Shown here: piece after piece, positions 5,750-40,943 of the stretch | Numbering within the stretch: the stretch's first letter is position 1 | Layout of the letters: each line of letters opens with the position of its first letter | Source of the DNA: Zygnema circumcarinatum SAG 698-1b | Taxonomy: Eukaryota > Plantae > Zygnematophyceae | Direction of reading: 5' to 3' | Assembly (NCBI GenBank): GCA_037447605.1 | Contig: CM074813.1 | Coordinates: 2,728,001-2,792,000, forward strand | DNA: 64,000 nucleotides | Translations under genes and position numbers: made by a program | The notes under the pieces: model-generated | Database searches by the model: none | Told to the model about the DNA's origin: nothing | The model's input: only the letters and a program-made list of their open reading frames with translations

Positions 5750-8745
5750 CACCTCCATCGCCCACCACAGGCCACCGTGCTGCCTCCACCTCCATGTCAC
5801 AGGTCGCCCGCCTTCAAGATTCCGCCCAAGGCCAGCTGGAGCTCGTACCGGAGGCTGCTATGGGAGGGGAGCGTCCGCATCGAAAAACTCCTTCCTAAAG
5901 CTCCCTCCGTCGTCCGGAACCTTCCCGCCAGCCCTTCTTCTTCGCCTAATAATTCGTACTAAGCTAACCCATAGCCGCGCTTACCTATTGTCAGCCGCCA
6001 CCAATGGTCGTGGCCGTGGCCGACAGCTTTGGCTAGGGCTGTGGCCGAAAATGTAATTATCATACATGAGGCTTCCGACGCTGACCAGACGGGTCCCCAG
6101 CCATCTCTTTCGCCTTCATTCCGGGCGACATCAAGACGGGGAGGTGGGATGGAGGGGTCCATGGGACTGGTAATCGTGCCCTACCCGTATCCCAAACTTC
6201 GTGGCGATGTCCTCGCAGATACTTCCCGCGATGGAAATAGGCTCTCCCCTCGCCTCTTTTTAAGCCGGATCCCTAATGTGATACCGGCCTCCTAAGTCTG
6301 ACATCTGGAAGTAAGACTTGAGAAGGTCCTTGAGGTTCTGAATTCCGGTCATGGAGGGGCTGATGATGATGAGGTCGTCCACGTAGGTTCCCACGTACAT
6401 CACATTCGCCCCCTCTCCTTTCATATAAACTGAATGGTTAGTTTCAAACCTTGCAAATCCATTCTCTTGCAAAAGGTTATTTATCTTCACACACCAGATC
6501 CTTGGGGTCCTCTTGAGCTGGTGAACATTCATATTCTCAGTAGCAGCTATGCAAAGCAAAGATCGCAATGCATTGAGTTTCACTATGGTGGAAAGCCAAC
6601 TAGACGTTTCCGCCGCCCTCCATCTTACTCCTCTCAAGTCCCCCGATTTCGTGAGAACGGAGCAAATCCCCTGCCAGGCCATTGCCCACCAGACCTTCTC
6701 TCGTCTCAGCTCGCTTTGGCCATCCTCCTCAGACAAAAGAAGGCAGTGGTACGGACAAAGGTCCGCGGCCCTCACTTGCCGACATGTGGCTGGGCAGTGT
6801 TCCCGCTGGCTCAAGCACGCATCAATCTGCCGGATGGCAAGCCCGGGGCGCGACTGGCGACGCCTCTCCGAACAACTCCACCGCTAAGCATCCAACGGGC
6901 GCCACTCTGGCTTTTGCCTGGCTACCGCCACGTGGTGTAAGATCCGTGTGATCAACGGTCGCCCGCCGGCTCATCTCCACCGTGGGATTCGGAAGTGTGC
7001 TACAAGCACTCCTCCCCGATCGGGCACCTCCACCGCCCGCCATACCTTTTCGAAATTGGTCCTGGCCCACTCCTCCTCAAACTCTTGTCGCCATCCTCTC
7101 GCTGATACTCCGCATTTACAAGTTGCCCCGCCTTCCTCTCCTAACGCCTACCTCAAGTAAAGGAGGCTTCTTCCAAGAGCATACTGGAAACACGGTCGTG
7201 GGCCGAAGTCGCGGGGAGTAGCCAGCCTGGACTAATCCCGTAAATCCTCGCTGCTCGTAACCACCGCTAAGGCACCCAACCGCATCATGACTTTTGCTTG
7301 GGTAGTAGCCGCCTTTGGCAAGTACGGACTTGTGTCCCTTCTAAGCCGCTAGCTTGTAAAGAGACGCCCCTCTAAAGGTAGACCTCTTTTGCCGTCTCTT
7401 TCTTCGCTACTCAAGGCTCTTCTTCCCCGGCCGCCGTTTGTCCTCGCTCGTGAAGCAGTCCGCGAAAGATGGCCGGGCTTCCCGCGAGTGAAGCACGTGG
7501 GGCTCTTTCTGTCCCCCCGGTCGTTCTTCCCCTTCTGTAACAAACCCGCCTCTAGCAGGGTTTGAACTCTGGACCTCCCGGTATTCACCTAAGTGCTTTA
7601 CCATTAAAAGGCAACCGCGGATGTAAGTACTAGGTCATACACTCAATGTATACCGTTCGTTACATTCCTCCCCACCTAAACCGTGCTCGTCCTCGAGCAC
7701 CATGCTCAAGGGTTTTCACGAGCGCGTTCAAGCTCCTTCATCACATGGACCTACAGACTTGGCTGCTCCAGCTCAACCAATCTGTACCATGCTCAGAGAT
7801 CACGGTGTTTTTAGGGTGGATTGCAAATACCAGTCCTTAGGCTCTGATACGAATGTAACAAACCCGCCTCCAGCAGGGTTCGAACTCAGGACCTCCCGGT
7901 ATTCACCTAAGTGCTTTACCATTAAAAGGCAACCGCGGATGTAAGTACTAGGTCATACACTCAATGTATACCGTTCGTTACACCTTCTCCCTTCCAAAAT
8001 TCTTCGAACGAATTAGAAGGACATTATCAGTGCCTAACTTCTCCTTTTCTAACAGCAAGTCACACTCTCTGATCCTGCCCTTTACTTGCTCCAACGTCAT
8101 AGGAAGACAAGTTAGCTGGGTTCTCAAAGATTCTACTGCATGAGCATATTTGCTTGTTAGGCTTACCAAAAACTGATAGATCTGGCTAGGTAAGGGAATC
8201 GGCTGCTTAGCCACTACGCACTTCTGCATTAGGCTATCAAATTTGACCATGTAGTTAGTCAGGGTCTCACCCTTCTCCATTCTGAATGCACCTATTTCAA
8301 AGATACAGATAATCGGCAACCTCTTTCGCAATCCCCCATAGAAGATCGCTCGAGACTCTTCCACATTTCCTCAAAGAAGAAGATGTGTCTAGCAAAGATG
8401 TATTAAAGGGGCATTGCCTCATCGGCCATGGCAATATAACCTCGCTGCCTTGTGTAGCTTTCGCGTGCTATAGGTCGGTGTTTTTGCCGCCGCCTCGCAG
8501 TCGGCCGAAAAGGTGGTTCTGGTGCTGGAGCGTGGGATTGCCATCGCTTCCCGGCTATACACCTCGCTGTCGCCTCCATTGGAACCCGTTCCTACCCCGA
8601 TAACATTATCTTTCACTCTCTCTCACTCTATCTCTCACTTACCATAGCCTATAACTCATGTAATGAACGCGTAGACGAGCACGCTGGAAATCACACACGA
8701 GAGAGTGTAAGAGAAAGCTCACACCCCTAGGGAGTAGGGAGCAGA
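5750..8745 (-). mobile_element. Degenerate, internally deleted Ty1/copia element (gag, knuckle, RT with YVDD) with a truncated 5' LTR from 8659
   Basis: RT ...YVGTYVDDLIIISPS... at 6260-6600 and a decayed RT C-terminus at 5960-6260. Gag (MEKGETLTNYMVKFDSLMQKC...) at 7983-8364 continues across the TRIM. PBS-like gcctataactca at 8647-8658. Confidence 0.85.
7536..7982 (-). mobile_element. TRIM (447 bp): 129-bp LTRs, tRNA-iMet PBS, PPT and 5-bp TSD
   Basis: LTRs 7536-7664 and 7854-7982 (TGTAAC...GTTACA, 3 substitutions). TSD CCTTC at 7531-7535 and 7983-7987. On the minus strand, TCGTATCAGAGCC follows the 5' LTR (12/13 to TGGTATCAGAGCC) and the PPT AGGTGGGGAGGAA precedes the 3' LTR. The 189-bp interior is non-coding. 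Confidence 0.95.
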
Positions 8746-16064: not shown

Positions 16065-19000
16065 AGCTGAAGGAAGAAGAAGGGAAGAAGAAGGAAGAAG
16101 AAGGGAAGAAGAAGGAAGGAAGGAAGAAGAAGGAAGAGGAAGGAAGAAGAAGGAAGGGAAGAAGAAGGAAGGAAGGGAAGAAGAAGGAAGGAAGGGAAGA
16201 AGAAGGAAGGGAAGGGAAGAAGAAGGAAGGAAGGAAGAAGAAGGAAGCTGAAGGGAAGAAGAAGGGAAGGAAGGAGGAAGAAGGGGAAGGGCAAGGGAAG
16301 AAGAAGGAAGGGAAGGATCTAAGAAGGGAAGGGAAGGAAGAAGAAGGAAGGAAGGAAGAAGAAGGGAAGGAAGAAGGAGGGAAGGGAAATAGCTAGCTGA
16401 AGGAAGGAAGAAGGAAGGAGGAAGAAGAAGGAAGGAGGAAGAAGGAGGAAGAAGAAGGAGGAAGGAAAGAAGTAAGAAGAAGAAGGAAGGAGGAAGGAGA
16501 AAGAAGAAGGAAGAAGGAGAAAGAAGGAAGAAGGAAGAAGAAGAAAGAAGAAAGAAGAAGGAAGAAGGAGGAAGAAGAAGAAGGAAGGAAGGGAAGAAGA
16601 AGGGAAGGAAGGAAGAAGAGGGAAGGAAGGGAAGAAGAAGGGAAGGAAGGAAGAAGAAGGAAGGAAGGAAGAAGAAGGGAAGGAAGGGAAGAAGAAGGAA
16701 GGACGGGGAAGAAGAAGGAAGGAAGGAAGAAGAAGGAAGGAAGGGAATGAAATAGCTGAAGGAAGGAAGAAGGAAGGAAGGAAGAAGAAGGGATGAAGAA
16801 TAGGGTAGCTGAAGGAAGAAGAAGGGAAATACTGAAGGAAGGAAGGAAGAAAAATAGGGATGGAAGGAAGGAAGAAGAAGGAAGGGAAGGAAGGGAAGGA
16901 AGGAAGAAGAAGGGAAGAAGAAGGAAAGGAACCGGAAGAAGAAGGAAGGAGGAATAATAGCTACGAAGCCATTGAAGGAAGGAAGGAAGAAGAAGGAAGG
17001 AAGGAAGAAGAAGGAAGGAAGAAGAGAAGGAAGAAGAAGGGAAGGAGAAGGGAAGAAGAAGGAAGGAAGAAGAAGGGAAGGAAGGAAGGAAGGAAACCGA
17101 AGGAAGAGGAAGGAAGGAAAATGAAGGAAGAAGAAGGGAAGGGAAGAAGGAAGGAAGGGAAGAAGAAGGAAGGAAGGGAAGAAGAAGGGAAGGAAGGGAA
17201 GAAGGAAGGAAGGACTAAGAAGGAAGGGGGAATAAATAGCTGAAGGAAGGAAGAATAGCTGAAGGAAGGAAGAATAGCTGAAGGAAGGGAAATAGGCCAG
17301 GGCTGAAGGAAGAAGAAGGAAGGAGGAAGGAAGAAGAAGGAAGAAGAAGGAGGAAGAAGAAGAAGGAAGGAAGGAAGAAGAAGGAAGGAAGGGGAAGAAT
17401 GAAGGAAGGAAGGAAGAAGAAGGAAGGAAGGGAAGAAGAAGGCAGGGAAGGAAGAAGGAAGGAAGGAAGAAGAAGGGAAGGGAAGGAAGAAGAAGGAAGA
17501 AGAAGGGAAGGGAAGGAAGAAGAAGGGAAGGGAAGGAAGAAGAAGGAAGGAGGAAGGAACAAGAAGGAAGGTGGAAGGAAGAAGAAGGAAGGAAGGAAGA
17601 AGAAGGGAAGGAAGGAAGAAGATGTAGCCGAAGGAAGAATGAAGGAAGGAAGGAAGAAGAAGGAAGGAAGAAGGAAGGAAGAAGAAGGAAGGAGAAGAAG
17701 GAAGGGAAGAAGAAGGAAGGAAGGGAAGAAGAAGGGAAGGAAGGGAAGAAGAAGGGAAGGGAAGAAGATGGAAGGAAGGGAAGAAGAAGGAAGGAAGAAG
17801 AAGGGAAGGGAAGGGATGAAGAAGGAAGGAAGGGAAGAAGAAGGAAAGGGTACAATAGCTGCATGAAGGAAAGAAGCTGAGGAAGAAATAGCTTTAAAAT
17901 AGCTAGCTGAAATAAAATAGGCTGAAGGGAAGGAAATAGCCAGGCTGAAGATGAAGGAAGAAGAAGGAAGGAAGGAAGAAGAAGGAAGGAAGGAAGAAGA
18001 AGGGAAGGGAAGGAAGAAGAAGGGAAGGAAGGAGGAAGAAGGAAGGAAGGAAGAAGAAGGAAGGAAGGGACGAAGAAGGAAGGAAGGAAGGAAGAAGGAA
18101 GGAAGGAAGAAGAAGGAAGGAAGGGAAGAAGGAGGGAAGGAAGGAAGAAGAAGGGAAGGAAGGGAAGAAGAAGGGAAGGGAAGAAGAGGAAGAAGGAAGG
18201 AAGGAAGAAGAAGGATGAAGGAAATAGCCAGCTGAAGGAAGGAAGAAGAAGGAAGGAAGGAGGAAGAAGGAAGGGCAAGGAAGAAGAAGGAAGGAAGGAA
18301 GAAGAAGGAAGGAAGGAAGAAGAAGGAAGGAAGGAAGAAGAAGGGAAGGAAGAAGAAGGAAGGAAGAAGAAGGAAGAAGGAAGAAGAAGGGAAGAAGGGA
18401 AGGGAAGGAAGAAGAAGGGAAGAGGAAGGGAAGAAGAAGGGAAGGAAGAAGAAGGAAGGGAAGAAGAAGGAAGGAAGGGAAGAAGAAGGAAGGGAAGGAA
18501 GAAGAAGGAGCTGAATGGAAAGAAGAAGGAAGGAAGGAAGAAGAAGGAAGGAAGGAGGAAATAGCTGAAGGGAAGAAGAAGGGAATGAAGGACGAAGAAG
18601 GAAGGGAAGGAAGAAGAAGGAAGGAAGGAAGAAGGAAGGAAGGAAGAAGGGAAGGAAGGGAAGAAGAAGGAAGGAAGGAAGAAGAAGGAAGGAAGGAAGA
18701 AGAAGGAAGGAAGGGAAGAAGAAGGGAAGGGAAGGAAGAAGAAGGAAGGGAAGGGAAGAAGAAGGGAAGGAAGGGAAGAAGAAGGGAAGGAAGAAGAAGG
18801 AAGGAAGGGAAGAAGAAGGGAAGGAAGGGAAGGGAAGATGAAGTTTTGAAGGAAGGAAGAAGAATGAAGGAAGGGAAGAAGAAGGAAGGAAGGAAGCCAT
18901 TAGGGCTGAAGGAAGGAAGAAGAAGGAAGGAAGGGAAGAAGAAGGAAGGAAGGGAAGAAGAAGGAAGGAAGGGAAGAAGAAGGAAGGAAGGAAGAAGAAA

Positions 19001-20390
19001 AGGAAGGATGGAAGAAGAAGGAAGGGAGGGAAGAAGAAGGAAGGAAGGGAAGAAGAAGGAAGGAAGGGAAGAAGAAGGGAAGGAAGGGAAGAAGAAGGAA
19101 GGGAAGAAGAAGGGAAGGAAGGGAAGAAGAAGGAAGGGAAGAAGAAGGAAGGAAGGAAGAATAATGAAGGAAGGGAAATAGGCTGAAGGAAGGAAGAATA
19201 ATGAAATAATGGAAGAAATAGTCGGAAAATAAATACGAAAAAGGAACTGAAGGAAGGGAATGAAGAAGGAAGGGAAGGAAGGAAGGAACCCGAAGGAAGG
19301 AAGGGAAGAAGAAGGAAGGGAAGGGAAGAAGAAGGAAGGAAGGGAAGAAGGAGGGAAGGAAGGAAGAAGAAGGAAGGAAGGAAGAAGAAGGGAAGGGAAG
19401 AAGAAGGAAGGAAGAAGAAGGGAAGGAAGGGAAGAAGGAAGGGAAGGAAGAAGAAGGAAGGAAGGGCCAGGCTGAAGGGAATAAATAGTTGAAGGAATAA
19501 AAAGAATAGCTGAAGGGCTGAGCCGAAGAAGGAATAGCCAGGCTGAAGGAAGGAAGAAGAAGGAAGGGGAAGAATGAAGGAAGAGGAAGGAAGAAGAAGG
19601 AAGGGAAGGAAGAAGAAGGAAGGGAAGAAGAAGGAAGAAGGAAGGAAGGAAGAAGAAGGGAAGGGAAGGAAGAAGAAGGGAAGGAAGAAGAAGGAAGGGA
19701 AGGAAGAAGAAGGAAGGAAGGGAAGAAGAAGGAAGGAAGGAAGAAGAAGGGAAGGAAGGGAAGAAGAAGGAAGGAAGGGAAGAAGAAGGGAAGGGATGGG
19801 ATGGGAAGAAGAAGGGAAGGGATGGGGAAGAAGAAGGAAGGATGGGGAATAGAAGGAAGGATGGGGAAGAAGAAGGAAGGAAGGAAGAAGAAGGAAGGAA
19901 GGAAGAAGAAGGAATGAAGGAAGGAAGGAAGGAAGGGAAGGGAAGAAGGAAGGAAAATGAAGGAAGGAAGGAAGACGGAAGGAAGACGGAGGGAAGACGG
20001 AAGATCGAAGGAAGGAAGGAAGATGGAAGGAAGGGAAGAAGGAAGGGAAGGAAGGGAAGAAGGGAAGGAAGGGAAGGAAGAAGGAACGAATGAAATGGAA
20101 TGAAATCGAATGGAATGGAATGAAATACGGAAATCGAAGGAATGAAGGGAAGGGATAAGGGAAGGAAGGGAAGGAAGGGAAGGAAGGAAGGGAAGGGAAG
20201 GAAGGAAGGGAAGGAAGGGAAGGAAGGAAGGGAAGGAAGGGAAGGGAAGGAAGGAAGGGAAGGAAGGAAGGGAAGGAAGGAAGGAAGGAAGGAAGGGAGC
20301 AAGGAAGCAAGATGGAAAGGGAAGGGAAGGGAAGGGAAGGGGAAGGGAAGGGAAGGGAAGGAAGGGAAGGGACGGGAAGGGAAGGAAGGA
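16065..20390. repeat. About 4.3-kb polypurine/polypyrimidine satellite (GAAG/GGAA/GAA mosaic) punctuated by an (AAT)AGCTGAAGG motif
   Basis: The + strand is almost all A/G. At least 11 AGCTGAAGG copies are present, and a 19-bp unit AATAGCTGAAGGAAGGAAG is tandem at 17235-17290. Confidence 0.95.
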
Positions 20391-21404
20391 GACGGAAGTA
20401 GAGCAGAAGGAAGGAGACGGAAGTAGAGCAGAGGGGAGACGGGGGCAATGGCGGGTTTGAGCTTGGGGGAAAGTGGGAGCGGTGAGAGGAAAGAGGAGAA
20501 GAGAGGGAGGGAAATTGAGAGAGTGATTGGGAAGAGTTGGCAAAGCGAGGCATCATACTCAAGCCTGTGCAAAAAGTATTTCTATTTCATAGAAATACTC
20601 TTTATTTGTCGCCTTTCAGACAGGGTGCCGAATAGGGCGAGTCATGAAGGAACTACTTTTGAATAATTTCCAAGAGGTAGGCCCCTATACCTTTTTCTTG
20701 ATGATCTTTTTCTTCTCGTCAGTATTTTGTTCAACCTTTTTTTTCCAATGATGCATGGAAGATTCCATTTCGTGTGCTATTATAAGTCAGTTAATCCAAT
20801 CATCCGATCCACATCACATCATCAACCTTTCGTACTCTTTTGCAGGTTGACATTGCTGGTTCTCTTGCAACATTTTATCGATGCGTTTAAATCAAGTCTT
20901 CAAGGAATATCCGCTCTGAAACCAAAAAATCATGCCTCGAATTTCTTCACAAATTTCTGTGAGGTAGGGTGAGTCTCACCTGCCCATGCTAAATATTAGT
21001 AATGATTGTTTTCCTCGGACGGTAATTATGAATATTTGTATCCTCATGTTGAGGATTTCCGCCTTTTGTGCAAGGTACGAGTCTCAATCAAATTTGACGC
21101 TTCCCTTCAAGGCTTGTAAAGGTATGACGTGTATCCGTAAGTGTTAATAATGTTGCTTTTGTGACGGGTACAAATGGGGTAGAAGTGCAGAAATTCACAC
21201 CGTAATATAGCCACGCATGTCATTTGGGTGCAAGTGGGTGCACTCCACACCCTCACGCACCTATGACCTTGCTGAGTTTTTCCAGCAATCCAAGTTGGGC
21301 ACACTCTCTCACTTTCATCCTTGTTTGATCTCTCTCCCGCCTTCATCACTCTTCCCCTTCGATTTTCCTTCTAATCATAAAGCCATATATAAGCTTCCAT
21401 TATT

Positions 21405-24700: not shown

Positions 24701-25704
24701 TGACCAAACCCGATTTGGTCAGTGACTTCGAAGATGTCACTCCGCGACCTTCTCAGCGTTGCGCCCGCGTCGTCGTGAACAGGCGTAAGTGTCGGTGATC
24801 AATCTCGTTGATTCCGGAGCCAGTTTGATGATGCAGCGCCGCCCGGCTCGTCGTCACCGTTCGATTCGAAATCGTTGGTGACAGTGGTCTCTGCTAAGCG
24901 CGCTCGCGCCCGTTGATTCGTCTTCTCGCACCACTGAATCGACACCGTCCGATTCGTAGGAGATTTCAAACTTGTCGTTTTGCGAGAGTTTGGCCTCCAA
25001 GTCCATTCGGATTTCAACCGGAGGATTTTCTTGGAATCTGACATCGCGACTCCTCTCTACCTGTTTGGTTAAGGGATTCCACACCCGGTACGTGGGGCTG
25101 TCCTCATTATAGCCAATCAGGTACCCGGGAGTGGATCTACTCTCGAATTTGGAGTTTCTCCTGGGCTTCAGTACGGTCATGAAGCACCTTGCTCCCCATA
25201 CTCTGAAGTAAGCCACTGAGGGCTTCTTTCCGCTCCACACCTCCTCCGGCACCCTGTCCTGAAGCGCTCTTGTCGGGCACCTGTTTCTGATGTGAGCTGC
25301 TGCCATCACTGCCTCACCCCAAAAGGTTAAGGGAAGTGGGGACTCACTCATCATGGCCCTCACCATGTCCCCAAGCGTGCGGTTCACTCTCTCCGCAGCT
25401 CCATTGCTTTGAGGTGAGTAAGGGGCTGAAAACTGATGCTTCATGCCAAGAGCCTCGAAGTGATCTTTGAAATTCTTGGAGATGTACTCCCCTCCATTGT
25501 CAGAACGAAGGGACTTCACTTTCAGCCCGGTTTCTCTCTCCACTTCCACCTGCCACCTTTTAAAGACATCAAAGGTTTCAGCTTTACTATCAATCACCCT
25601 CACCCAGATCTTCCTAGAGCAGTCGTCTAGAAAGGTGATGAAGTATTTCGCCCCTCCTCGGCTGGTGGGAGTGATGGGTCCACATAAATCCGTGNNNNNN
25701 NNNN

Positions 25705-28700
25705 GGTAGAACTCGACATCTTCAATGAATTGCTCAATCACACAAAGCACGCTAAATGCAAGAGAACAACTCAGCGGAAATATGAAAATGTAAGGAGAAA
25801 GCCACCAGCCTAAAACTCCTTAAGATAAAGATGAAATACAACTTGACAACACTAGAGCCAAGCTTCAAGCACCTCTCTCAAGCTACGTGAATAAACCACC
25901 CACTACAAGCTGAACTCTTCCCACTATCTCCTAGGCCCTAAGCAAGATAGCCTCACTCCCAATGTGAGTCACGAGAAGGTTAACTTCTACCAAACAATCT
26001 AAGCCTTAAATACAATATGGCGCCATTAGTGACATTGTCACGTCACGGCCGCACATGCTACGCCTTGCAAGACCCTTATCCCGATCCTAATCTCGCGCCG
26101 TCGGATCCTCCTCAGCTTGCACGGATCCAGCACATCAATGCCGTCAGATCCGCCTCAGCCTTATCTCCATCCGAGTCCTCCACCGTAGGATCTGACTCCT
26201 CATTACTTGGCGTCATGTGGGACCCCGTAAGCCTACGAGCGCCACCGACCTAGGCCGTACAGGCCTTCAATTTAACCCGACACGTGGCGCCTTCCGATTC
26301 GCCACTGTCCTCCAAATGAATCATTGCTGACTCCGTACCTTGTCAGTTCTGCTCCGCGCGCTGATTCGCGCCGCGTCACTTCTCGATTTGTCGCGTCGCG
26401 CCACGTCACATCTGACTCCGCCACGCCGCGCCGCGCCACCGACCAATGTCCGTACATTCGAGGTCCTGGCCTTACAAATCGTACCACTGATTGGCTCCAC
26501 CGACATTCTGATGCCTTGCCTTGCCAAATCAGACTCGCGCGCTATACGCACACCCCTTAAAGACTTGTACGGTCGCCTAGACGCCCCTCCGTACAATGTG
26601 GACACTTTTGAGCACACCCCTCCTTAGAACTTAGTACCAACAACTTAGTGTACAACAAGTCCTTAACTACTTTACACTAACAATCCCCCTCTTGGTACTT
26701 AGTTCTCCATGGGTCCTAGTTCCATGAGACCACTACTATTCTCTAGTGTCCCACAACCAAATGAATGCTCCCTTGTCCTAACAAGCTGCCCCCTCTTGAT
26801 CCAAAGGCCTAGGAGAGAATCTTCCCCCTCTTGATCTCCTCTTGGTTGCCTTTCACATTCGATCCTGGGCGCTTCCACTGAACTCCTCATAGGTCCAGCA
26901 ACCGGGTATTCCTTTGTAGTTGCAACCTTGTACTCGGGCTGCTCCACTACCCTGGGTTGAAAGGACCCCTCCACTTCAACTCCATCCTTGTTTGGATGCA
27001 ACAAGCCGTGTTTCCGAGCCTCCACAGACTCACTAACTTTCGAGTGATCACGGAATTCGCACACATTCTCACCACCACTAATGTCCACCCTTTCGGTGAT
27101 GGGTCTTTTGACCCCCTTAGCCTGGCTATCTGAAATGTCGTTGGCGAAATAATCCCCTGCTCCCCTGAGCCTCAATGCTTGCTCTAGCATCCCCTTTCCT
27201 CCTCCAAGCTGGTCTGGATCTATCTTATGGTGAATGGGTTCCTCTACAGGGTCCTTGGCGGGATAGCTCAGCCCTTGAGCCTCCTTCCACTCTAGAAAGT
27301 AAAGCCCACCTTGCTGGATTCCCTTGCACAAGACTTGCCCTGTCTCCTTGTGAATGACCTCACAACTACCCTTCTCAAACCATACTCCATAGTCCTTCTC
27401 ACACAGCTGACTAACAGAGAGGAAATTAATCTGTAGTCCGGGAGTATGCAGTACGTTACCAACATGGACAACCCTCTGCGTGCTTCCCTCCCCGAGCACC
27501 TTCAACTTGACTGTTCCGCCTTGCGTCACCGAGACTCCTTCTCCAGTTGCTGAGTAGACCGAGCGGGTTCCCTCCAAAGTCTCCTTCTCTGCAAAGAGTG
27601 AGTCGTCCACGCACATGTGCCTTGAAGCACCGGAATCAATCACCCAAGGTTTAGCTGAATTTTTAACTCTAACACATCCGACAAACTCATCATTAGGTTC
27701 CCAATCCGAGAACATCAAGTTCGTCTCGTGAATCCTCTTGCGTTCATCTCTGGGATACCTGCCATCACCCCTCCTCCCTTCTTGCTCGTTTAGAGCATCT
27801 GCATTCGAGGATGAACCACCATTCTGAACGTTGGGGCAGTTCCTCTTGAAGTGACCGGTCTTCCCACAAGAGTAGCAAGTCCTCTGAGTCTTCAGCTCTC
27901 CACCATCTTTGGCTGCGTTTGGTCCCTTGCCGTTCCTGTATGGGCGAGCAGTTGCAGCATACAGCTTCTCCGAACTTGACCTGTACTGCTTCTTGTCCTG
28001 AAGACCATCCTCCTCTACCACTCTCCTCTTGACCTGCTCAAAGGTCATCTTAGTCGTGGAAAGCTGAGTTCGTAGAGCAGTGCAAGCAGGGTCAAATCTG
28101 TCCGGCAAGCCTCCAAGGAATAGACTAATCTTGTGATCCAAGTGAAGGGGCAATTTCAGCCCATCAAACTTTTGCATCAGATTATCAAACTTGATCACAT
28201 AGTCTTTAAGCTCCTCCCCTGAATCCAAACTGAGTTTTCCAAGCTCCGTGTAGAGATAAACTACAGTGGCATTATCTACCACATCATAAATCTTCTCTAG
28301 AGTATCCCACATCTCCCGAGCTGTCTTTAACTCTGAAATCAGGTCTGTAGGTTCCTCACTAACGCCAGCACAAAGCAGGGTCCTAACCTTGCAATCCTTA
28401 ACCCTCCACTTCTCAAACTCAAGTGGATTAATCTCAGAATCGGGGGCCACAATGGAGCCATTCACATACCCCAACAGCCGCTTGTTCTCCAGCACTGTGA
28501 GCATGCGAAACTTCCACCGCTTGTAGTTCTTCCCATGCGAAAGTTGGAATATAGTAAACTTCAAATGCTTCGCCGTAGCCGACTCATTACCACTTACTTG
28601 TTCGCGGCGCCCTCCTTGGTAAGAACGCCTTTACTCCTCACAGGTAGAACTCGACATCTTCAATGAATTGCTCAATCACACAAAGCACGCTAAATGCAAG

Positions 28701-29621
28701 AGAACAACTCAGCGGAAATATGAAAATGTAAGGAGAAAGCCACCAGCCTAAAACTCCTTAAGATAAAGATGAAATACAACTTGACAACACTAGAGCCAAG
28801 CTTCAAGCACCTCACTCAAGCTACGTGAATAAACCACCCACTACAAGCTGAACTCTTCCCACTATCTCCTAGGCCCTAAGCAAGATAGCCTCACTCCCCA
28901 ATGTGAGTCACGAGAAGGTTAACTTCTACCAAACAATCTAAGCCTTAAATACAATATGGCGCCATTAGTGACATTGTCACGTCACGGCCGCACATGCTAC
29001 GCCTTGCAAGACCCTTATCCCGATCCTAATCTCGCGTCGTCGGATCCTCCTCAGCTTGCACGGATCCAGCACATCAATGCCGTCAGATCCGCCTCAGCCT
29101 TATCTCCATCCGAGTCCTCCACCGTAGGATCTGACTCCTCATTACTTGGCGTCATGTGGGACCCCGTAAGCCTACGAGCGCCACCGACCTAGGCCGTACA
29201 GGCCTTCAATTTAACCCGACACGTGGCGCCTTCCGATTCGCCACTGTCCTCCAAATGAATCATTGCTGACTCCGTACCTTGTCAGTTCTGCTCCGCGCGC
29301 TGATTCGCGCCGCGTCACTTCTCGATTTGTCGCGTCGCGCCACGTCACATTTGACTCCGCCACGCTGCGCCTCGCCACCGACCAATGTCCGTACATTCGA
29401 GGTCCTGGCCTTACAAATCGTACCACTGATTGGCTCCACCGACATTCTGATGCCTTGCCTTGCCAAATCAGACTCTCGCGCTATACGCACACCCCTTAAA
29501 GACTTGTACGGTCGCCTAGACGCCCCTCCGTACAATGTGGACACTTTTGAGCACACCCCTCTTTAGAACTTAGTACCAACAACTTAGTGTACAACAAGTC
29601 CTTAACTACTTTACACTAACA
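25705..29621 (-). mobile_element. Recently inserted gag-protease-only (TR-GAG-like) LTR element, copy 2
   Basis: LTRs 25705-26682 (left end in a gap) and about 28617-29621 differ by about 7 substitutions and 1 indel. PPT AGAGGGGGAT. Single ORF, no integrase/RT/RNase H motifs. Inserted into the host WHRRMGHL codons. Confidence 0.9.
26699..28564 (-). CDS. Copia-type Gag-protease polyprotein with an unknown C-terminal tail (621 codons open)
   Basis: Gag N-terminus (NYKRWKFRMLTVLENKRLLGYVNG), knuckle CYSCGKTGHFKRNC and aspartic protease VIDSGASRHMC, then GGLYFLEW and about 190 aa of unrecognised sequence. There is no in-frame ATG before codon 21, and an ATG lies 1 nt out of frame just upstream. 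Confidence 0.85.
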   Translation of the reverse strand: MKFTIFQLSHGKNYKRWKFRMLTVLENKRLLGYVNGSIVAPDSEINPLEFEKWRVKDCKVRTLLCAGVSEEPTDLISELKTAREMWDTLEKIYDVVDNATVVYLYTELGKLSLDSGEELKDYVIKFDNLMQKFDGLKLPLHLDHKISLFLGGLPDRFDPACTALRTQLSTTKMTFEQVKRRVVEEDGLQDKKQYRSSSEKLYAATARPYRNGKGPNAAKDGGELKTQRTCYSCGKTGHFKRNCPNVQNGGSSSNADALNEQEGRRGDGRYPRDERKRIHETNLMFSDWEPNDEFVGCVRVKNSAKPWVIDSGASRHMCVDDSLFAEKETLEGTRSVYSATGEGVSVTQGGTVKLKVLGEGSTQRVVHVGNVLHTPGLQINFLSVSQLCEKDYGVWFEKGSCEVIHKETGQVLCKGIQQGGLYFLEWKEAQGLSYPAKDPVEEPIHHKIDPDQLGGGKGMLEQALRLRGAGDYFANDISDSQAKGVKRPITERVDISGGENVCEFRDHSKVSESVEARKHGLLHPNKDGVEVEGSFQPRVVEQPEYKVATTKEYPVAGPMRSSVEAPRIECERQPRGDQEGEDSLLGLWIKRGQLVRTREHSFGCGTLENSSGLMELGPMEN

Positions 29622-31724
29622 GAGATGGCCCATTCGGCGATGCCACAACTTTGCCGCCGGATTTTCAGAGAGAGCATTGACTTGGTGTGAGAGGACCCCT
29701 CCTCCCTTTAGAAGGTAAAGGCCGTTCTTTTCTGTGCCTCTCAAAACAACCTTCCCGGTTAGTTTTTCCACCACCTTGCACTCCTCTCCATCAAACCAAG
29801 AAACATATCCTCTTTTGCCAAGCTGGCTCACGGAAATGAAGTTGCTTTGAAGACCAGGGGTAAGGAGAACGTTGCCCATGTAACNNNNNNNNNNTCCTTG
29901 TTATGCGCTTCTGAGCTCATCATCAAGTTTGTCTCGCTTGCTCCATCTTGGCAAGCCACAGACTTGTGGCCCTTCTTGCCGCACTTAAAACACGTTCCAC
30001 CGAAAGTAGGCTTCTTCTTCTTGCTCGGATCTCCACCTGAAGACTCCCCTTTCTTCTCGGGTCGTCCCTTGGTCTGGTAGCAGTCCGTTGACAGATGTCC
30101 ACGCTTGCCACACGTGTAGCATGTAGGGGGAGGACGATCTCCTCCATCTTTCTTCCCTTTGTTCTTGCCGAATTTCGCAGCCTGGATTGACAGGACACTG
30201 TCTGCAGATCCTTTCCCACCCTCTAGCAATATTTCTGCCTCTCTGATTCTCCCTTTGATTTGCACCATGGACATGGGCAGGCTAGCAAGGTGAGTTCTTA
30301 GGGACTCTACAACTCTATCAAATTTGCTTGTAAGTCCTAATAGGAAGTGATGAATCTCGCTAGGCAAGGTTATGGGCTGCTTGGCAGCTATGCATTTCTG
30401 CATCAAGCTATCAAACTTTACAAAGTACTGAGTGAGTGTGTCCCCCTTCTCCATTTTGCATGCCCCTAATTCTGCATACAAATTTACAGGTAAACCACTT
30501 TCTGCTACTTCATAAACTGACTGCAAACTGCTCCACATAGTTGCTGCACATTTTATATCAAGCAGCATGGTGCCAGGACCATTGCCTACTGACATAGCAA
30601 TATAGCCTGCTATTTTCTTATTGTTCACTTGCCATAGGTCGAAGACTTTCGTTTCCGCTGCGTTGGTTGGAGGAGGTGGTTCCGGCGAACTTCCATCGAC
30701 ATACTTGAACAGGTTCTTTGTCTCCAGCATGTAAGTCATCCGCCACCTCCAATGTCTGTACTGGGTCCCTTCGAAGGTCGGGACCTTGAACCTGGGNNNN
30801 NNNNNNGGTCTCTGCTAGCGCATCGCCGCCGTTCGGTTCGTCTTCTCGCACCACTGAATCGACACCGTCCGATTCGTAGGAGATTTCAAACTTGTCGTTT
30901 TGCGAGAGTTTGGCCTCCAAGTCCATTCGGATTTCAACCGGAGGATTTTCTTGGAATCTGACATCGCGACTCCTCTCTACCTGTTTGGTTAAGGGATTCC
31001 ACACCCGGTACGTGGGGCTGTCCTCATTATAGCCAATCAGGTACCCGGGAGTGGATCTACTCTCGAATTTGGAGTTTCTCCTGGGCTTCAGTACGGTCAT
31101 GAAGCACCTTGCTCCCCATACTCTGAAGTAAGCCACTGAGGGCTTCTTTCCGCTCCACACCTCCTCCGGCACCCTGTCCTGAAGCGCTCTTGTCGGGCAC
31201 CTGTTTCTGATGTGAGCTGCTGCCATCACTGCCTCACCCCAAAAGGTTAAGGGAAGTGGGGACTCACTCATCATGGCCCTCANNNNNNNNNNGTACGGTG
31301 TACTATTCGGGGCTATACCCCTATTGTACACATCACCTCCCTCCCTCCCTCCCTCCCTCTCTCCCTCCCTCCCTCCCTCCCTCCCTCCCTCCCTCCCTCC
31401 CTCCAGGCTTTGTGGTGGACAAGGAGGACAGCAGTGTGACTCGCTCAGATGCCCATTTCCGGGACCTCTTTCAGCAAAGTTCGCTTCACCTTTTTAAGAC
31501 AAAGGTCCTTCACTTCACATCTCTTCTCTATGAATTTGCTCACAGAATATTCAAAAGAAGATGTATGCATTCTTCTTTCGTATTTTCCTTTGTCGGGCAG
31601 TGTATATTTTTTCCATAACATATACAAGAAATCTCCCTTTTCCTCCCCTCTCCATGTCTTTTTTCTCTTCCAGCTGCAACGGAAATTTCCCGCAGACCTA
31701 TTTCAGGTGCGGATGTATGCGTTG

Positions 31725-32371
31725 TGTAGTGTACAATAGGGGTATAGTACGACGTAGTACACTTTACGGTCCTTAGCCGATGTCGTGAAGATCAATGCCA
31801 TGTTCCTTCTCACCAGCTGCGGCTACAAAATGCAACAGGTGCTCTAGGGACGTCGATACGGTGCGAAACATATCAAACAGAACGATTCGACACATTTCAA
31901 TATATATATTGAACTGGTCAATACGATACAGCTCGATACATGTCGTCTTAACAGTTGGATACAGTATGTTATTTATCGACTAAAGCAGTGTGTGCGATAC
32001 GATATATCTCGGTACTCTTCAATATGTACCGTACGGGCGAATCCGTTAGGTAACGGAATATGCCGACAACGCTTCAAGTGCCACGTCATGACACGTCATC
32101 CACTCATATCGCGCCACGTGGTGGAGGGAATCTTCCATTCCGAATGGAAGCTTCGCTTGGCGCGTCACGCTGGTGACTGCGCACACTGCGACACTTGAAA
32201 ACTATACAACTAGTGTGAAAAGTAGGACTGTAATGAGGATATCAATACAATTTTGTTTGATACACTAGAGAGATGAGAGTGATGAGAGTGATGAGAGTGA
32301 TGCAGCATGGTTTTACTCACCATAGTTCGAGTCCATGACTGAGATTGTGTTGTCTTAGCTTGGATCCTGTC
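31725..32371 (+). repeat. LTR-like sequence related to the 22081-22972 LTR, in the opposite orientation
   Basis: 31725-31790 (tgtagtgtacaataggggtatag...acggtccttagc...gtcgtga) is the reverse complement counterpart of 22905-22972. The right end (…cctgtca) is tentative and no TSD was found. Confidence 0.45.
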
Positions 32372-33489
32372 AAAGGCCTCCTTCTTCCTCCCCCCCTCGA
32401 TCCTGGCCGCTCTCGCAAAATTGAGAACTTCTTCACTGAAATAACAACCTCAAGACAGGCGACGTCCGCCTCACCCCGTTAATGAAGCCCCCTTCCTCCT
32501 TCTTACTCTCCGCCTCCACCTCCAATCCGCCCACAGCAACAGCATCACCAACAGCAGCAACACAACAAAAGCAAAAAAAGANNNNNNNNNNGGACAATCG
32601 AAGAAAGGTAATTGATTGCAAGGGATTTATTTGAAGCTTGGCCCCACCTCCCTGCCACCTGGATTTGATCAAACCCACAAGAGTGCGCGAAACATTCCCT
32701 TGCTGCCGCGCCACGGAATATGTGCAAGGTGCCTGAACAACGGAGATCTAAGTGCTCAATGATTTTTTTCATGAACTTTGATTGTGCTTCACGACACATT
32801 TCAACCTCAGTGGAGTCTTTGGATGGAAACAATAAGGTTTTGTACCTGCAAATCAACAAACAAACGTGTCAATAAAAACAATACATTTGTGCAAAAATAT
32901 AAAACAAAATACACAAATAATAGTTGATTGGATAAGTTTAGACTCACCAAAGGTAGTTGCTCCGAAGATCTGGAGGAGGTTCTTCTGATACAATGAACCT
33001 GTGGAACAAATATCGTGATATCCATCCATGACGCAAAATTCGGTCTGAATGTCCTAAGGAAGCCCGTATTGGTACACTCCTCCGGTTCTTTTTTCCCCAT
33101 TGACACCACAGGGCCGATGCGATTCGGATGGGCGATAGGCACATTTGTAGCCATATCGTGATAAATAGATCGACCAGCGAATTGATCTTTGGTCATCTCT
33201 GAAGCACATCATTGCGCTTTCTTGTAGGCTACCTCTTTACCGTACTTTAAATATGTTTTGGATTTGTTGAATGACCCCATATACCTTAATAACTTTTGAA
33301 AGTCTGAAAGCGCTAGTTTATCCTTAACAGTCCCTCGTTTAGGATCAATGAACATCCTGTAGACACAAAAAACTAAAAGACATTTAGAGAGGGAGGAGGA
33401 GGAGGGGGTAGGGGGGAGAGCAAGTAAGGAGGGAGAGAAGGAGAGATCGGGCAAAGAAAGAGGAAAGAGAGAAAGCGGCCAACCGATAG

Positions 33490-34075
33490 CCGAGAATCAC
33501 GAGAATGCAAAATCACGAGAATCTGAGAATCACGAGAATCACGAGAATCTGAGAATCTGAGAATCACGAGAATGCAAAATCACGAGAATCTGAGAATGCA
33601 AAATCACGAGAATCTGAGAATCACGAGAATCTGAGAATGCAAAATCACGAGAATCTGAGAATGCAAAATCACGAGAATCACGAGAATCACGAGAATGCGA
33701 GAATGCGAGAATGCAAAATACAAAATCACGAGAATCGCGAGAATCACGAGAATCTGAGAATGCAAAATCACGAGAATCTGAGAATACAAAATCTGAGAAT
33801 CTGAGAATCACGAGAATCACGAGAAAGCAAAATACAAAATCACGAGAATCGCGAGAATCACGAGAATCACGAGAATCTGAGAATACAAAATCTGAGAATC
33901 TGAGAATGCAAAATCACGAGAATCTGAGAATGCAAAATACAAAATGCAGAATGCAGAATGCAGAATGCAGAATGCAGAAAGCAGAATGCAGAATGCAGAA
34001 TGCAGAATGCAGAATGCAAAATGCTGAATGCTGAATGCAGAATACAGAATGCAGAAAGCAGAAAGCAAAAAGATA
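33490..34075. repeat. Intronic tandem mosaic of GAGAATCAC/GAGAATCT/GAATGCA units
   Basis: Directly visible in Crypton intron 2: 8-9-mers at about 33490-33930 grade into (GAATGCA)n at about 33940-34070. Confidence 0.95.
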
Positions 34076-34529
34076 ACTTGCCTAAGTCGTCTTTCATCGG
34101 TAGAGCGGGCCATGATCTCCACCATATACTTGACTTGCAAGTTTTCACTCACTTTTACACCCAAAGATACATGATCATGTGTTATAAAATCAATAGTTTT
34201 TTGGGCATGTTGCAATGCAAAAATACTATTAGACAAAGTGCTGGGGGTTAAAGGACCTGCATTCATAGTGCCATTGTCTAATCTCCAAAACAAAAATGCT
34301 GCCACTCTTTCTGAATGTGGAACTGGCCTCCAACCCTCTGTTTCACACTTAGCAACAAATTGCTTTATTACGGGGCGGTATGATGCCTTCGTAGATTTTG
34401 GGCGTAACCTCTCTACCCCAGAAACTAATAATTGGCTTTGAGCTGTAGTTGCCCTGCACAAAAACAGAAAGAAAACCCTTAATTCAATAATTCTTCAAAA
34501 AGAGTGACATAAAATGTACCTAATTTGAA

Positions 34530-34950
34530 AGAAAAGCAGAAAGCCAAAAGCAGAATGCAGAATGCAGAATGCAGAATACAGAATGCCAAATGCCAAATGC
34601 AAAATGCAGAATGCAGAATGCAGAAAGCAGAAAGCCAACAGCAGAATGTAGAATGTAGATTGCAGAATGTAGAATGCAGAATGCAGAATGCAGAATGCAG
34701 AATGCAGAATGCAGAATGCAGAATGCAGAATGCAGAATGCAGAATGCAGAATGCAGAATGCAGAATACAGAATGCAGAATGCAGAATGCAGAATACAGAA
34801 TGCAGAATGCAGAATGCAGAATACAGAATGCAGAAGAATGCAGAATGCAGAATGCAGAAAGCAGAAAGCAAAAAGTAGAAAGCCAAAAGCAAAAAGCAGA
34901 AAGCACAGAGCAGAAAGCAGAAAGTGAAAAGCAGAAAGCAGAAAGCCAAT
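34530..34950. repeat. Intronic (GAATGCA)n heptamer array
   Basis: Directly visible in Crypton intron 1, with GAAAGCA variants at the edges. A short copy also lies at about 35235-35285. Confidence 0.95.
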
Positions 34951-35405
34951 AGCATACCTTGGCTTTATAGGCATGTCGCGTCTTTGTTCCTCTTCATCTT
35001 CAATTGTCGTTTCCGCTGCAAATATTGTCCTTTTAAGCTCTTCATCTCCTATAATACATCCATTCTTCTTCACTAGATAAGAGGCATCATCAAATACGCT
35101 CCACGCTTCGTCTTCTGGACTCAACCCTAGATGATGAGGATAGAGATGAGGAATTCTTGGATCCATTTCTGCAATAGAAGAAAGAGGTAAGTAAACCACG
35201 CTGCATAAATGGATGGATAGAAAAAAAGATGGAGAATGCAGAATGCAGAATGCAGAATGCTGAAAGCAGAATGCAGAATGCAGAAAGATGGATAGAGGCG
35301 TACCTGCAACACATGCGGTGGTAATGTGTAAGGGGGGGGGGGGGGCGCGGCCGCCACACACCGCTCTCCGCAAGCAAGCAGGGCCTCCCTCGCTCGCTCG
35401 GGCTG

Positions 35406-35455
35406 TGTAGCAAACACGCCTCCAGCAGAGATCGAACTCTAGACCTACCGGTACC
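35406..35455 (-). repeat. 50-bp relic homologous to the TRIM LTR end
   Basis: TGTAGCAAACACGCCTCCAGCAGAGATCGAACTCTAGACCTACCGGTACC versus TGTAACAAACCCGCCTCCAGCAGGGTTCGAACTCAGGACCTCCCGGTATT (7854-7903), about 41/50 identical. Confidence 0.7.
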
Positions 35456-35536
35456 AGGACACGATGTTCAATTTCAATGGGCGGTGGGCAAGCGGCGGCG
35501 AGCACACCCGAAGTTCAATTTCAGTGGTTTTAAATG

Positions 35537-35614
35537 ACGTGGCGCCGACGTGGATGGACATGTAGACGTGGAATCGACGTGGCAGACGTGGCGCCACCGT
35601 GGCATCTACGTGGC
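35537..35614. promoter_or_regulatory. Cluster of seven ACGTGG-type (G-box/ABRE-like) motifs
   Basis: Six ACGTGG and one CCGTGG in 78 bp, all in the same orientation, between two divergent transcription units. Function is inferred only. Confidence 0.45.
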
Positions 35615-36223
35615 AATCGGCACCGCGGTGACCGCGCGCTCGGCCGGCGTCGAACGCTCGGGCGCTGCGCCGTACCTGGGAGGACGCTGCAGGGCGGGTG
35701 GGCGGCCGGGGGGCGGGGAGCTGCAGCAATTCCGATCGTGGCGATCGACGGTGGGGAGGGGGGGAGCCTCGCTGCAGCCGGTGCACAGAACGCTTATGTG
35801 ACGTCATGGCCATCGTTTTCTACGGAACTCGCACATGGAAAGGCCAGATGATGCGCCACTGCCCGTACGGTCAGTGAGCGGAGCGAGCACCACGACCTCC
35901 CTGTCCCTCGCCTCTCCTTCTCCCTCGTTCTCCCTCTCCCTCCCCCTCACCATCCCCATCTCCCTCTCCTTCGTCCTCTCCCACTCTTTTTCCCACTCCC
36001 CGTCTCTCTCCCTCTCCCTCTCCCTCTCTCTTTCCCGCTCCGCCTCTCCCTCTTCCTCTTCCTCCTTCCTCTCCCTCCCCTCTCCCTCTCCCCCTCTCCA
36101 CCTCTTCCCCTCTACCTCTTTATCTCTATCCCCCTCATTCCCTCCCCCCTCCCCCTCTCTCCCTCTCCCTCCCCCTCGTTCCCTCTCCTCCTCCCCCTCT
36201 CTCACTGTCCCTCTCCCTTCAGA

Positions 36224-38923: not shown

Positions 38924-40943
38924 ATGGCGAGGGCGAGTCCCCTCAAGCCAATAAACCCTAACCCTAACCCTAATCCTAACCTTAACCCTAACCCTAACCT
39001 AAAAGGTTTTGAAAACCCGAGCGGCTCTGAACCCTCTTGGAACCCTAAAACCCCCAAAGCCGAACCTGCGGGCCGCGGCCCTGAACCCCTCCCCGCCCCC
39101 CCTCCTCCAAACCCTAAAAACCTGTTTTCCGCGACCGATGCCGTCACGTGCACGTTTCTGTTCGTGTGGGCGGTTCTATGCGCCGCCATGGTTGTACGGA
39201 AACGGAAACTGTGGCGGGCGGGCGCAGCGGCCGCCGGCTTTTGGGTCCTGTCGGCGGCCATGGAACGCTTTTTTTGTCGTTTTGTTCCGGCGGGGTTGAA
39301 GGTGGACCGAGAGAGGCTCGCGCTCTGGCATAACACGGTCGTGGCATGCTCTCATTCGCTGGCGGCGGCGGGCGGAGGTGGGTGGGAAATATTTTATATA
39401 TATATGTATATGTATTTTTTTTTTTAAATTATCGCTTATTTGTTGTGGCCAATGTAAAAGACCCTTTTAAAAAAAATAGGGGGGGGTGGAAAAAAAAAAT
39501 AATGATTTTTTCGCTTGGAACATTCCCCCTCCCCCTCCCCCTTCCCCCCTTCCCCCCCCCCCCCCCTCCCCCCCCTTTTTTTCTATTTAAATATTAATCG
39601 TAAACCGGCTTTTTTCCGTCCACAGCGTCAAGACCCTTCAAGACCCTATCTTTTGATTCTTAAAACATTTTTTAGCCGAAACATACCCTAAAATTTCAAT
39701 CCTTGATGATCAACCACTGAAAAAAACTGTTGTTAATATCCTTACATTCCCGCCAACTTCCAGTGCTGCTGGTGCTCTTCTCCGAGCCCCAATCCTTCTT
39801 AACTGAGGGCATGTACACGGGACATGGAACCGCTGCGTATTCCGTTGTCTCCCTCTCCTGCGGATACTTCGCCTACGACCTGTGGGACACTCTAAGGAAG
39901 AGGCTCTACAACCCTCGCTCTCCCTCCATGCTCGCTCACAACGCTCTCCTGCTAGTCTGCTTCACCACCGCTCTCTACCGTGACGTCACCATCAACTACC
40001 TCATCTTAACCCTAATCTGTGAGGTGAAGAAGGCACACTTCCTTTCCGTTTAAAGCAGAGTCTCTAATTCAAGTGATGGAACTCGAGGTAGAGCGCTTGA
40101 AGTCTTCCACTGAGAGGTTGCAATGGTGCACTTGAAATTACAAGAACGGAAGGAAGGGCCTCAAGCAGGACTCCCTAGGGATTCTAAGAACTGAGGAGTT
40201 TCAAAATTGGAAAGGCTCAGAACTGATAGGTTTTTTCTTGTCCTCATCCCTATTGACGCGCTCTTTTTTTCCCCCCCCCTCTCTCTCTCTCTGCATCTCC
40301 CTCCATTTCCCTCTCCCCTCCCGCCACCTTTCCCTCACCCCCCCTCCCTCCCGCTCCATCCCTCTTCTCCTCGCCTCTCTCTATCTCTCCATCTATCCTT
40401 CCATCTCTTCCCCCCCCCCCCTCTCTCTCTACCTCTCTCCATCCCCCCCCTCCAACTCTTTCTCACTCGCTCCCTTTCCCCCCCTCCATCCATCTCGTCC
40501 TCCTTTCTCGCGATCTCCCCGCCTCTCTTTCTATCTCTCTCTCCACCCCCCTCACTCCCCCTGATCCCTCTCTCTCACCCCCCCCCTCTCTCTCCCTCCA
40601 TCAGGTGAACTCCGTGTTCCTCCATCAGCGCAGACTCCTGCGACTTGCAGGAGTGAGCCCCCGCAGTCGTGTGAACAGGCTCAATTGGACCCTCATTTGG
40701 ACCACATTTGTAGGGGCCCGGGCGGCCGCCCACGCCCTAATTCCCATTCGCTTGGCCCTCGATTACAAGAGCTTTCCGCGGGGAGTGGAATTTCCAATGG
40801 CTATTTGCGGAATTTTAGGGTTTAATGTGTTGAACATCGAGCTTGGAAGAGACTTGGTTCGGGCACAAAGGAAGGAGGCGCTATTGTGGGGCTTGGAGGA
40901 GGTCAGGGAGGGTGCAGGAAATGAAGGGAAGAAGCTTCAGTGA
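38924..40943 (+). CDS. TLC (TRAM/LAG1/CLN8) domain membrane protein; exons 38924-39377, 39764-40023, 40605-40943
   Basis: SCGYFAYDLWD, MLAHNALLLVCF, LICE|VNSVFLHQRRLLRL and TFVGAR are TLC motifs. Splice phases are consistent; the start codon is uncertain. Confidence 0.85.

Follow-up and report, generated by a model that had tools for sequence, protein, structure and literature searches.

To our knowledge, Cryptons are rare among DNA transposons and poorly understood, and only one family of them has been seen moving, in Chlamydomonas reinhardtii. Crypton elements, Crypton-Cn1 among them, are reportedly treated in a work by Goodwin from 2003. The present analysis concerns a minus-strand gene in a stretch of 64,000 nucleotides (nt) from Zygnema circumcarinatum SAG 698-1b (contig CM074813.1, positions 2,728,001 to 2,792,000 of the forward strand), hereafter the window, whose own numbering is used unless a scaffold is named. 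On its sequence, we assign this gene to the tyrosine recombinases of the CryptonF/Ndc10 type. The closest described element, CryptonF-1_cRei of C. reinhardtii, is an active, autonomous Crypton with introns drawn in its gene, and it inserts when its terminal CACCG recombines with a CAYCG target (Lopez-Cortegano et al. 2023, PMC9977147). The background offered in an earlier note on this stretch, which knew Cryptons from fungi, oomycetes, diatoms and animals, is outdated for the green lineage given this active element (PMC9977147). The CryptonF elements of fungi and oomycetes (Crypton-Cn1 and others) encode an NDC10_II-type recombinase and have no reverse transcriptase (RT), terminal inverted repeats (TIRs) or long terminal repeats (LTRs) (Kojima and Jurka 2011, PMC3212892).

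We consider it fairly probable that the locus is an expressed, multi-copy gene of the CryptonF/Ndc10 type with a complete catalytic set, and that its apparent damage stems from assembly. It would belong, as one of several near-identical copies, to a small family of genes with introns. Exon 2 would encode a helical DNA-binding domain at the N-terminus of the recombinase, and exons 3 and 4 a catalytic domain in which the whole Arg-Lys-His-Arg-Trp-Tyr set is kept. Assembly faults in a repeated region would account for the frameshifts and stops in exon 3 and for the 10-N gap that follows exon 4. By analogy with known Cryptons, DNA cleavage and rejoining by the protein would take place at a short motif at the element's end and at a like target motif, leading to insertion and clean excision (PMC3212892, PMC9977147).

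Structure, splicing and relatives of the gene

The gene extends from 35166 down to 32592 in four modelled exons, separated by three phase-2 introns and joined in frame (Table 1). The four exons joining in phase that the earlier note had described are borne out, with canonical splice sites and with exons 1, 2 and 4 open. Exon 2 carries the motif RPxPH..ERV..FL and putatively encodes the core-binding (SAM-like) domain of this enzyme. Every member of the recombinase motif series listed in that note is present in exons 3 and 4, with the W codon split by intron 3: exon 3 holds DPKRG, RxDDQR, GKKN and YLFHRF..PPD, and exon 4 holds HIFRG (the HxxR), GRW and NYL, which contains the catalytic Tyr. The catalytic set of Arg, Lys, His-x-x-Arg, Trp and Tyr is complete. 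Its members lie in different frames of the window text, and in public contigs the readable parts share a single frame. The shifts and stops noted earlier in exon 3 are indeed found in the window, where the exon counts 409 nt (a multiple of three is needed) and breaks into three frames, 33355-33212, 33236-33057 and 33144-32950, all of which end in a stop; CFRDDQR lies in the second frame, and GKKN and YLFHRF..EPPPD in the third.

Public sequencing data show the gene to be transcribed. Twenty public runs of the same organism, from eight studies, contain part of 32592-33480, and contigs of four of these runs, from four studies, were compared with 32000-33480 (X1, X2 and X4, DNA-type; X9, RNA-type). 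One X9 contig skips exactly 32846-32947, the 102 nt of intron 3. Another stops at 33358 and continues in an overhang identical to 34084-34113 of the window, with the GC-AG intron 2 removed. In the RNA-type run, introns 2 and 3 are therefore taken out as modelled; both junctions that could be read in RNA, exon 2 to exon 3 and exon 3 to exon 4, are exact, which answers a check proposed in the earlier note.

Intron 2 has GC-AG ends and the classic donor AG/GCAAGT (the slash marks the splice junction; donor 34080-34081, acceptor 33357-33358), and its removal is confirmed in the RNA-type contig. Upstream of exon 1, an acceptor-like TTGCAG adjoins the exon and a donor-like CAG/GTACGC lies at about 35303, which suggests a further, putative 5' exon. 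The gene has three spliceosomal introns or perhaps four, and long satellites are found in three of them. One of these satellites, a 7-nt unit (GAATGCA on the plus strand, TTCTGCA-like on the gene strand), fills intron 1, a portion of intron 2 and also the putative 5' intron (34532-34946, 33927-34067 and 35229-35285), starting 12-17 nt past the donor each time; it has 52 matches in the 64-kb window, none of them outside these three intron sites.

The assignment to a family was approached by searching the exon pieces separately in Pfam, tblastn and BLASTP. Six separate exon pieces gave only one Pfam match, Phage_integrase in exon 4 at E = 0.1, over profile positions 94-157 (the part from HxxR to Tyr). 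A HMMER search of the whole library with exon 2 returned five matches, three of them real (P0003, P0002 and P0004; P0003 at E = 1.7e-4); the other two, Sushi-repeat and Ig-repeat proteins, were rejected as spurious. P0003, a protein of 902 amino acids, matches the Pfam families NDC10_II (9e-11) and GCR1_C (7e-5), which by sequence is the CryptonF architecture. P0007, from the same cluster, comes from MMETSP1392, poly(A) mRNA of Chlamydomonas chlamydogama. P0004 is located on L001, a 4-kb metagenome scaffold (ENA ERZ19570860) whose open reading frames (ORFs) match NDC10_II at 2.9e-12 and 7.4e-6 and GCR1_C at 8.5e-4, under the curated cut-off. Positions 1122-3731 of L001 hold an intron-containing CryptonF-type gene with the N-terminal domain, NDC10_II and GCR1_C, which has at least one intron position in common with the gene in the window.

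The pieces of exons 2-4 are colinear with both P0003 and L001, at 30-45% identity to the relatives; such agreement with two database sequences that are not related to one another goes beyond chance. Exon 2 matches residues 84-171 of P0003 at 4e-13 (BLASTP), L001 at 1e-11 and L002 at 2e-16 (both tblastn). The E3a piece of exon 3 reaches only 0.05 against residues 211-258 of P0003 (BLASTP) and 1e-6 against L001, where the E3c piece scores 2.5e-5 (tblastn), and exon 4 matches residues 357-437 of P0003 at 1e-7 (BLASTP) and L001 at 8e-17 (tblastn). The Arg, Lys, His-x-x-Arg, Trp and Tyr positions align in the gene of the window, L001 and P0003. An intron of L001 has the same position and phase as intron 3 of the window, inside the Trp codon (TG/G), and the acceptor of intron 2 stands at the same place in L001. 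By sequence, the gene is accordingly classed with the CryptonF/Ndc10-type tyrosine recombinase genes, as the earlier note had proposed, through the two relatives that carry NDC10_II and GCR1_C; in the profile check which that note had recommended, the direct part of the evidence is the single Phage_integrase match of the separate pieces, and the link to NDC10_II is transitive.

Other searches added leads or nothing. In the ESM Atlas, whose results we take as leads only, exon 2 lies near Phage_int_SAM_1, core-binding and QRICH1 clusters, and exon 4 near eukaryotic Phage_integrase fragments. Sequence searches of the PDB with exon 2, exon 4, a profile of exon 4 and P0003 gave nothing real. An AlphaFold model of exon 2 has a predicted local distance difference test score of 56 and found nothing below E = 4 against the PDB with Foldseek, which is uninformative either way. 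A metagenome scan with an exon 2 alignment confirmed no relative, a word search with P0003 recovered only P0003 itself, and relatives of exon 1 were not detectable.

Exon 3, the assembly gap and the number of copies

The frame changes of exon 3 lie in a patch at which window and public contigs disagree; of the four runs, only X2 (DNA-type) and X9 (RNA-type) cover it. Reading these contigs over exon 3, a step the earlier note had called for, reveals another, open text. Between 33177 and 33261, the window differs from them by seven indel events and eight substitutions, and its 145 nt at 33033-33177 correspond to 155 letters. On one side of the patch, 441 nt contain one substitution, and 377 nt beyond the gap are identical. 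The window text of 33050-33149 is found in none of the four runs. By counting in X2, exon 3 is 414 nt long, a multiple of three. When the public differences were read into 33161-33355 of the window by script (listed differences only), one open frame resulted, which matches L001 with 44% identity over 61 residues (E = 1e-18), L002 at 5e-10 and P0003 at 7e-6; for the exon 3 text of the window, the match to L001 is limited to 36 residues, at 1e-6. The X9 overhangs translate as ..LVDLFIDDMATTAIG and FRHSDPEFCSHGW.., and the latter fits FRNKYPLFCGHG in L001 and HVDPEVCSH in P0003, at a place where the window reads GHSDRILRHGW.

The 10-N gap, whose closure the earlier note had recommended, corresponds in public contigs to 588 bases. 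The first 30 of these letters in X9 extend the frame of exon 4 as ..IVPPVCRVLAGF, a reading similar to ..LLLAGF of L001 and ..VILAGG of P0003. The coding frame runs on into the gap, and therefore exon 4 is incomplete in the window. The damage to exon 3 is most likely a fault of assembly and not decay, since the patch is sharply bounded, holds as many indels as substitutions and lies beside a collapsed gap. At 32731, all four public runs have T where the window has G; this is the third base of a Gly codon on the gene strand, and the difference is synonymous.

The depth of public contigs over the gene body exceeds that over the unique 464-nt left flank 5-10 times in the three DNA-type runs (549/90, 414/42 and 146/29). 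The contig graph branches at 32190 in X1, X2 and X4, and in X2 the flank of the window type (depth 42) and the other flank (361) together come close to the depth of the body (414). Variant contigs with few substitutions appear from 32766 upward. These observations suggest several near-identical copies, among which the copy in the window is alone with its left flank; the window itself holds no second copy. Position 32190 is either the end of the element or the truncation point of this copy. Candidate short terminal repeats, CACTGC (32184-32189 and 35857-35862) or GACAC, are within chance expectation, and a search for TIRs yielded only low-complexity matches, with no LTRs or TIRs found.

Within the tail common to the other copies, X9 contigs cover only 32316-32436 and support an exon-like piece at about 32322-32435, whose link to the gene is unproven. 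Both X9 overhangs around 32316-32436, as well as the left flank of the majority, are absent from the window. A 38-codon piece at 32321-32434 was considered as a fragment of GCR1_C and rejected, having no Pfam match and BLAST scores at chance level. At 32267-32302, a 9-nt repeat, AGAGTGATG, is one unit shorter in contigs of three public runs.

Table 1. Positions of the features of the recombinase locus in the window
Feature	Position	Strand	Description
Exon 1	34958..35166	-	predicted; ATG at 35166; 69 codons + 2 nt; open; donor GTATGC, phase 2
Intron 1	34454..34957	-	predicted; GT-AG; nearly filled by 7-nt satellite at 34532-34946
Exon 2	34082..34453	-	acceptor ...GTGCAG, donor GCAAGT; open; N-terminal helical domain
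Intron 2	33357..34081	-	GC-AG, donor AG/GCAAGT; 9-nt and 7-nt satellites at 33491-34067
Exon 3	32948..33356	-	acceptor ...CTACAG, donor GTGAGT; first half of catalytic domain
Intron 3	32846..32947	-	GT-AG, 102 nt; splits Trp codon (TG/G)
Exon 4	32592..32845	-	acceptor ...TTTGCAG; open; second half of catalytic domain; enters 10-N gap
Differing exon 3 patch	33033..33261	-	window against public contigs; both frame changes and first stop inside
10-N gap	32582..32591	.	588 letters in X1, X2 and X4
Tail common to other copies	32190..32581	-	DNA-type contigs through 32205-32581 at gene-body depth
Parting point of this copy from the majority	32189..32190	.	branch of the contig graph

Decay, domestication and other recombinases

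The copy in the window may truly be a decayed Crypton, truncated at its 3' end, with the open public text coming from intact sister copies; the earlier note had set recent decay beside errors of consensus in a locus that may be intact. Several copies are apparent and this one leaves the majority at 32190, the downstream exon of the RNA overhangs is absent from the window, and contigs lose rare variants, all of which decay would accommodate. Decay should, however, be spread out and consist mostly of substitutions, whereas here about 15 differences, half of them indels, are crowded within 230 nt. Variants at single-copy depth are kept in the same runs (records 18-20 of X4 and the flank contigs), yet none of these runs preserves the text of the window at 33050-33149, and a 10-N gap hiding 588 nt only 440 nt away indicates local assembly trouble. 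We regard a decayed copy as unlikely. Of the two options in the earlier note, the public contigs, open and better conserved in this region, favour the errors of consensus over the recent decay.

A host gene derived from a Crypton, domesticated like Ndc10, Gcr1 and DUF3504 genes and keeping DNA binding while being immobile, would account for expression and correct splicing, and also for an intron position in common with a relative of 33-45% identity. Against such a gene stand the retention of all catalytic residues, which the known domesticated Crypton genes have lost (PMC3212892), the depth and graph branching that point to several near-identical copies with different flanks, and the position of the gene among copia fragments. 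Domestication, which the earlier note had left as an option, is consequently disfavoured by the complete catalytic set and the several apparent copies, and we hold it improbable. That it is the recombinase gene of a retroelement of the DIRS/Ngaro/PAT type, or of another element with a tyrosine recombinase, appears more improbable still. Exon 2 does resemble the SAM-like N-terminal domain also present in DIRS recombinases, an ALOG cluster stands at rank 25 in the Atlas, and the direct Pfam match is only to the general Phage_integrase family. An adjoining RT or RNase H, which the earlier note had named as grounds for abandoning its assignment, is nevertheless absent: no ORFs for RT, RNase H or methyltransferase were found on either strand in some 5 kb upstream of the gene and 10 kb downstream, where ORFs of at least 75 amino acids were scanned at 35.4-41 kb and of at least 130 amino acids elsewhere in 22-46 kb, and what retroelement sequence there is in the vicinity consists of Ty1/copia gag and integrase. 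The gene is not DIRS-like because there is no RT beside it and because both full relatives carry NDC10_II and GCR1_C.

Several points weigh against an expressed family member damaged only by assembly. NDC10_II has no Pfam match on the window's own separate exon pieces, and the visible tail, 31900-32581, yielded no GCR1_C, while 588 nt sit in the gap and most copies extend past 32190. About 95 middle letters of the public exon 3 lie outside the reading, so that its intactness there is a matter of length arithmetic alone, and Logan contigs may lose rare variants, so that the public text could stem from sister copies. Contig depth is a poor measure of copy number by the tool's own warning, and the kinds of the runs, DNA or RNA, are guesses of the tool. 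With these points counted, we still favour the expressed multi-copy CryptonF/Ndc10-type gene. A wider proposal is put forward tentatively, as possible and on balance doubtful: the gene may belong to an active CryptonF family in the algae closest to land plants, with introns that would be ancient components of the element, one of them agreeing in position and phase with an intron in a relative of only 33-45% identity.

Surroundings and comparison with known systems

On the minus strand, 24857-31331 holds fragments of at least two Ty1/copia elements, broken by 10-N gaps and comprising gag, a zinc knuckle, a protease-like barrel, an integrase core and an SH3-like domain. Next to them, a 37-nt inverted repeat (31300-31336 and 31724-31760; 78% complementary) encloses 387 nt beside a 10-N gap, possibly as a small TIR element; near its right arm, at about 31756, the public flank contig apparently breaks off. 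On the other side of the gene, at a distance of about 4.5 kb, an exon-like ORF on the plus strand (39730-40050) has a TLC (TRAM/LAG1/CLN8) domain at E = 1.8e-8 and is probably a host gene. A 55-nt tRNA-like piece at 35399-35453, with a T-arm-like GAGTTCGATCTC on the gene strand, lies about 100 nt upstream of the donor of the putative 5' exon and is 85% identical to part (7854-7901) of a TRIM-type repeat at 7.5-8.0 kb; ARAGORN found no tRNA. Upstream of the gene, 35536-35602 holds three GACGTGGC (G-box-like) sites in 67 nt, with six in the window against about one expected, and the clusters of these sites beside the gene were not treated as part of the element. Farther away, a purine-only satellite of 4.3 kb (16069-20414; GAAG/GAA units, GC skew > 0.9) directly follows a 100-N gap.

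If the favoured reading is true, an expressed and complete family in a second, distant green lineage would offer a second system for the study of Crypton movement, and would help to explain how recombinase and DNA-binding parts turn into host genes. The locus also shows that the present assembly contains, within repeats, patches rich in errors and collapsed gaps, so that genes in it which look decayed need a check against reads before they are labelled pseudogenes.

Among the known systems, DIRS1-type recombinases with an ALOG or SAM-like N-terminal domain resemble the gene in the window in having a helical DNA-binding domain before the recombinase domain (Iyer and Aravind 2012, PMC3537659). 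The gene in the window differs from them in that no RT, RNase H or methylase adjoins it and in that exon 2 has no Pfam match to ALOG. The Ndc10/Cbf2, Gcr1 and DUF3504 genes belong to the same fold family, and the Pfam family NDC10_II recognises the relatives of the window gene; the Ndc10/Cbf2, Gcr1 and DUF3504 genes are single host genes that have lost their catalytic residues, whereas R, K, H, R, W and Y are all retained in the window gene, which is apparently present in several copies.

The CryptonF elements of fungi and oomycetes are like the window gene in having an NDC10_II-type tyrosine recombinase and no RT, and the relatives of the window gene combine the recombinase with GCR1_C. Fungal and oomycete elements have a GCR1_C tail and terminal direct repeats of 6 bp, whereas the window copy is known from its recombinase part alone; the window gene, in turn, is set apart from them by its three, perhaps four, introns with their three long satellites. 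A literature search found, within the library searched, no description of Cryptons in streptophyte or conjugating algae. The gene is a further member of the known CryptonF kind, perhaps in a further host lineage. CryptonF-1_cRei stands nearest to it in general outline, both being intron-containing Cryptons of the green lineage, a comparison made by description. The nearest full-length relative found for the window gene, P0003/P0007, comes from a Chlamydomonas species, as does CryptonF-1_cRei.

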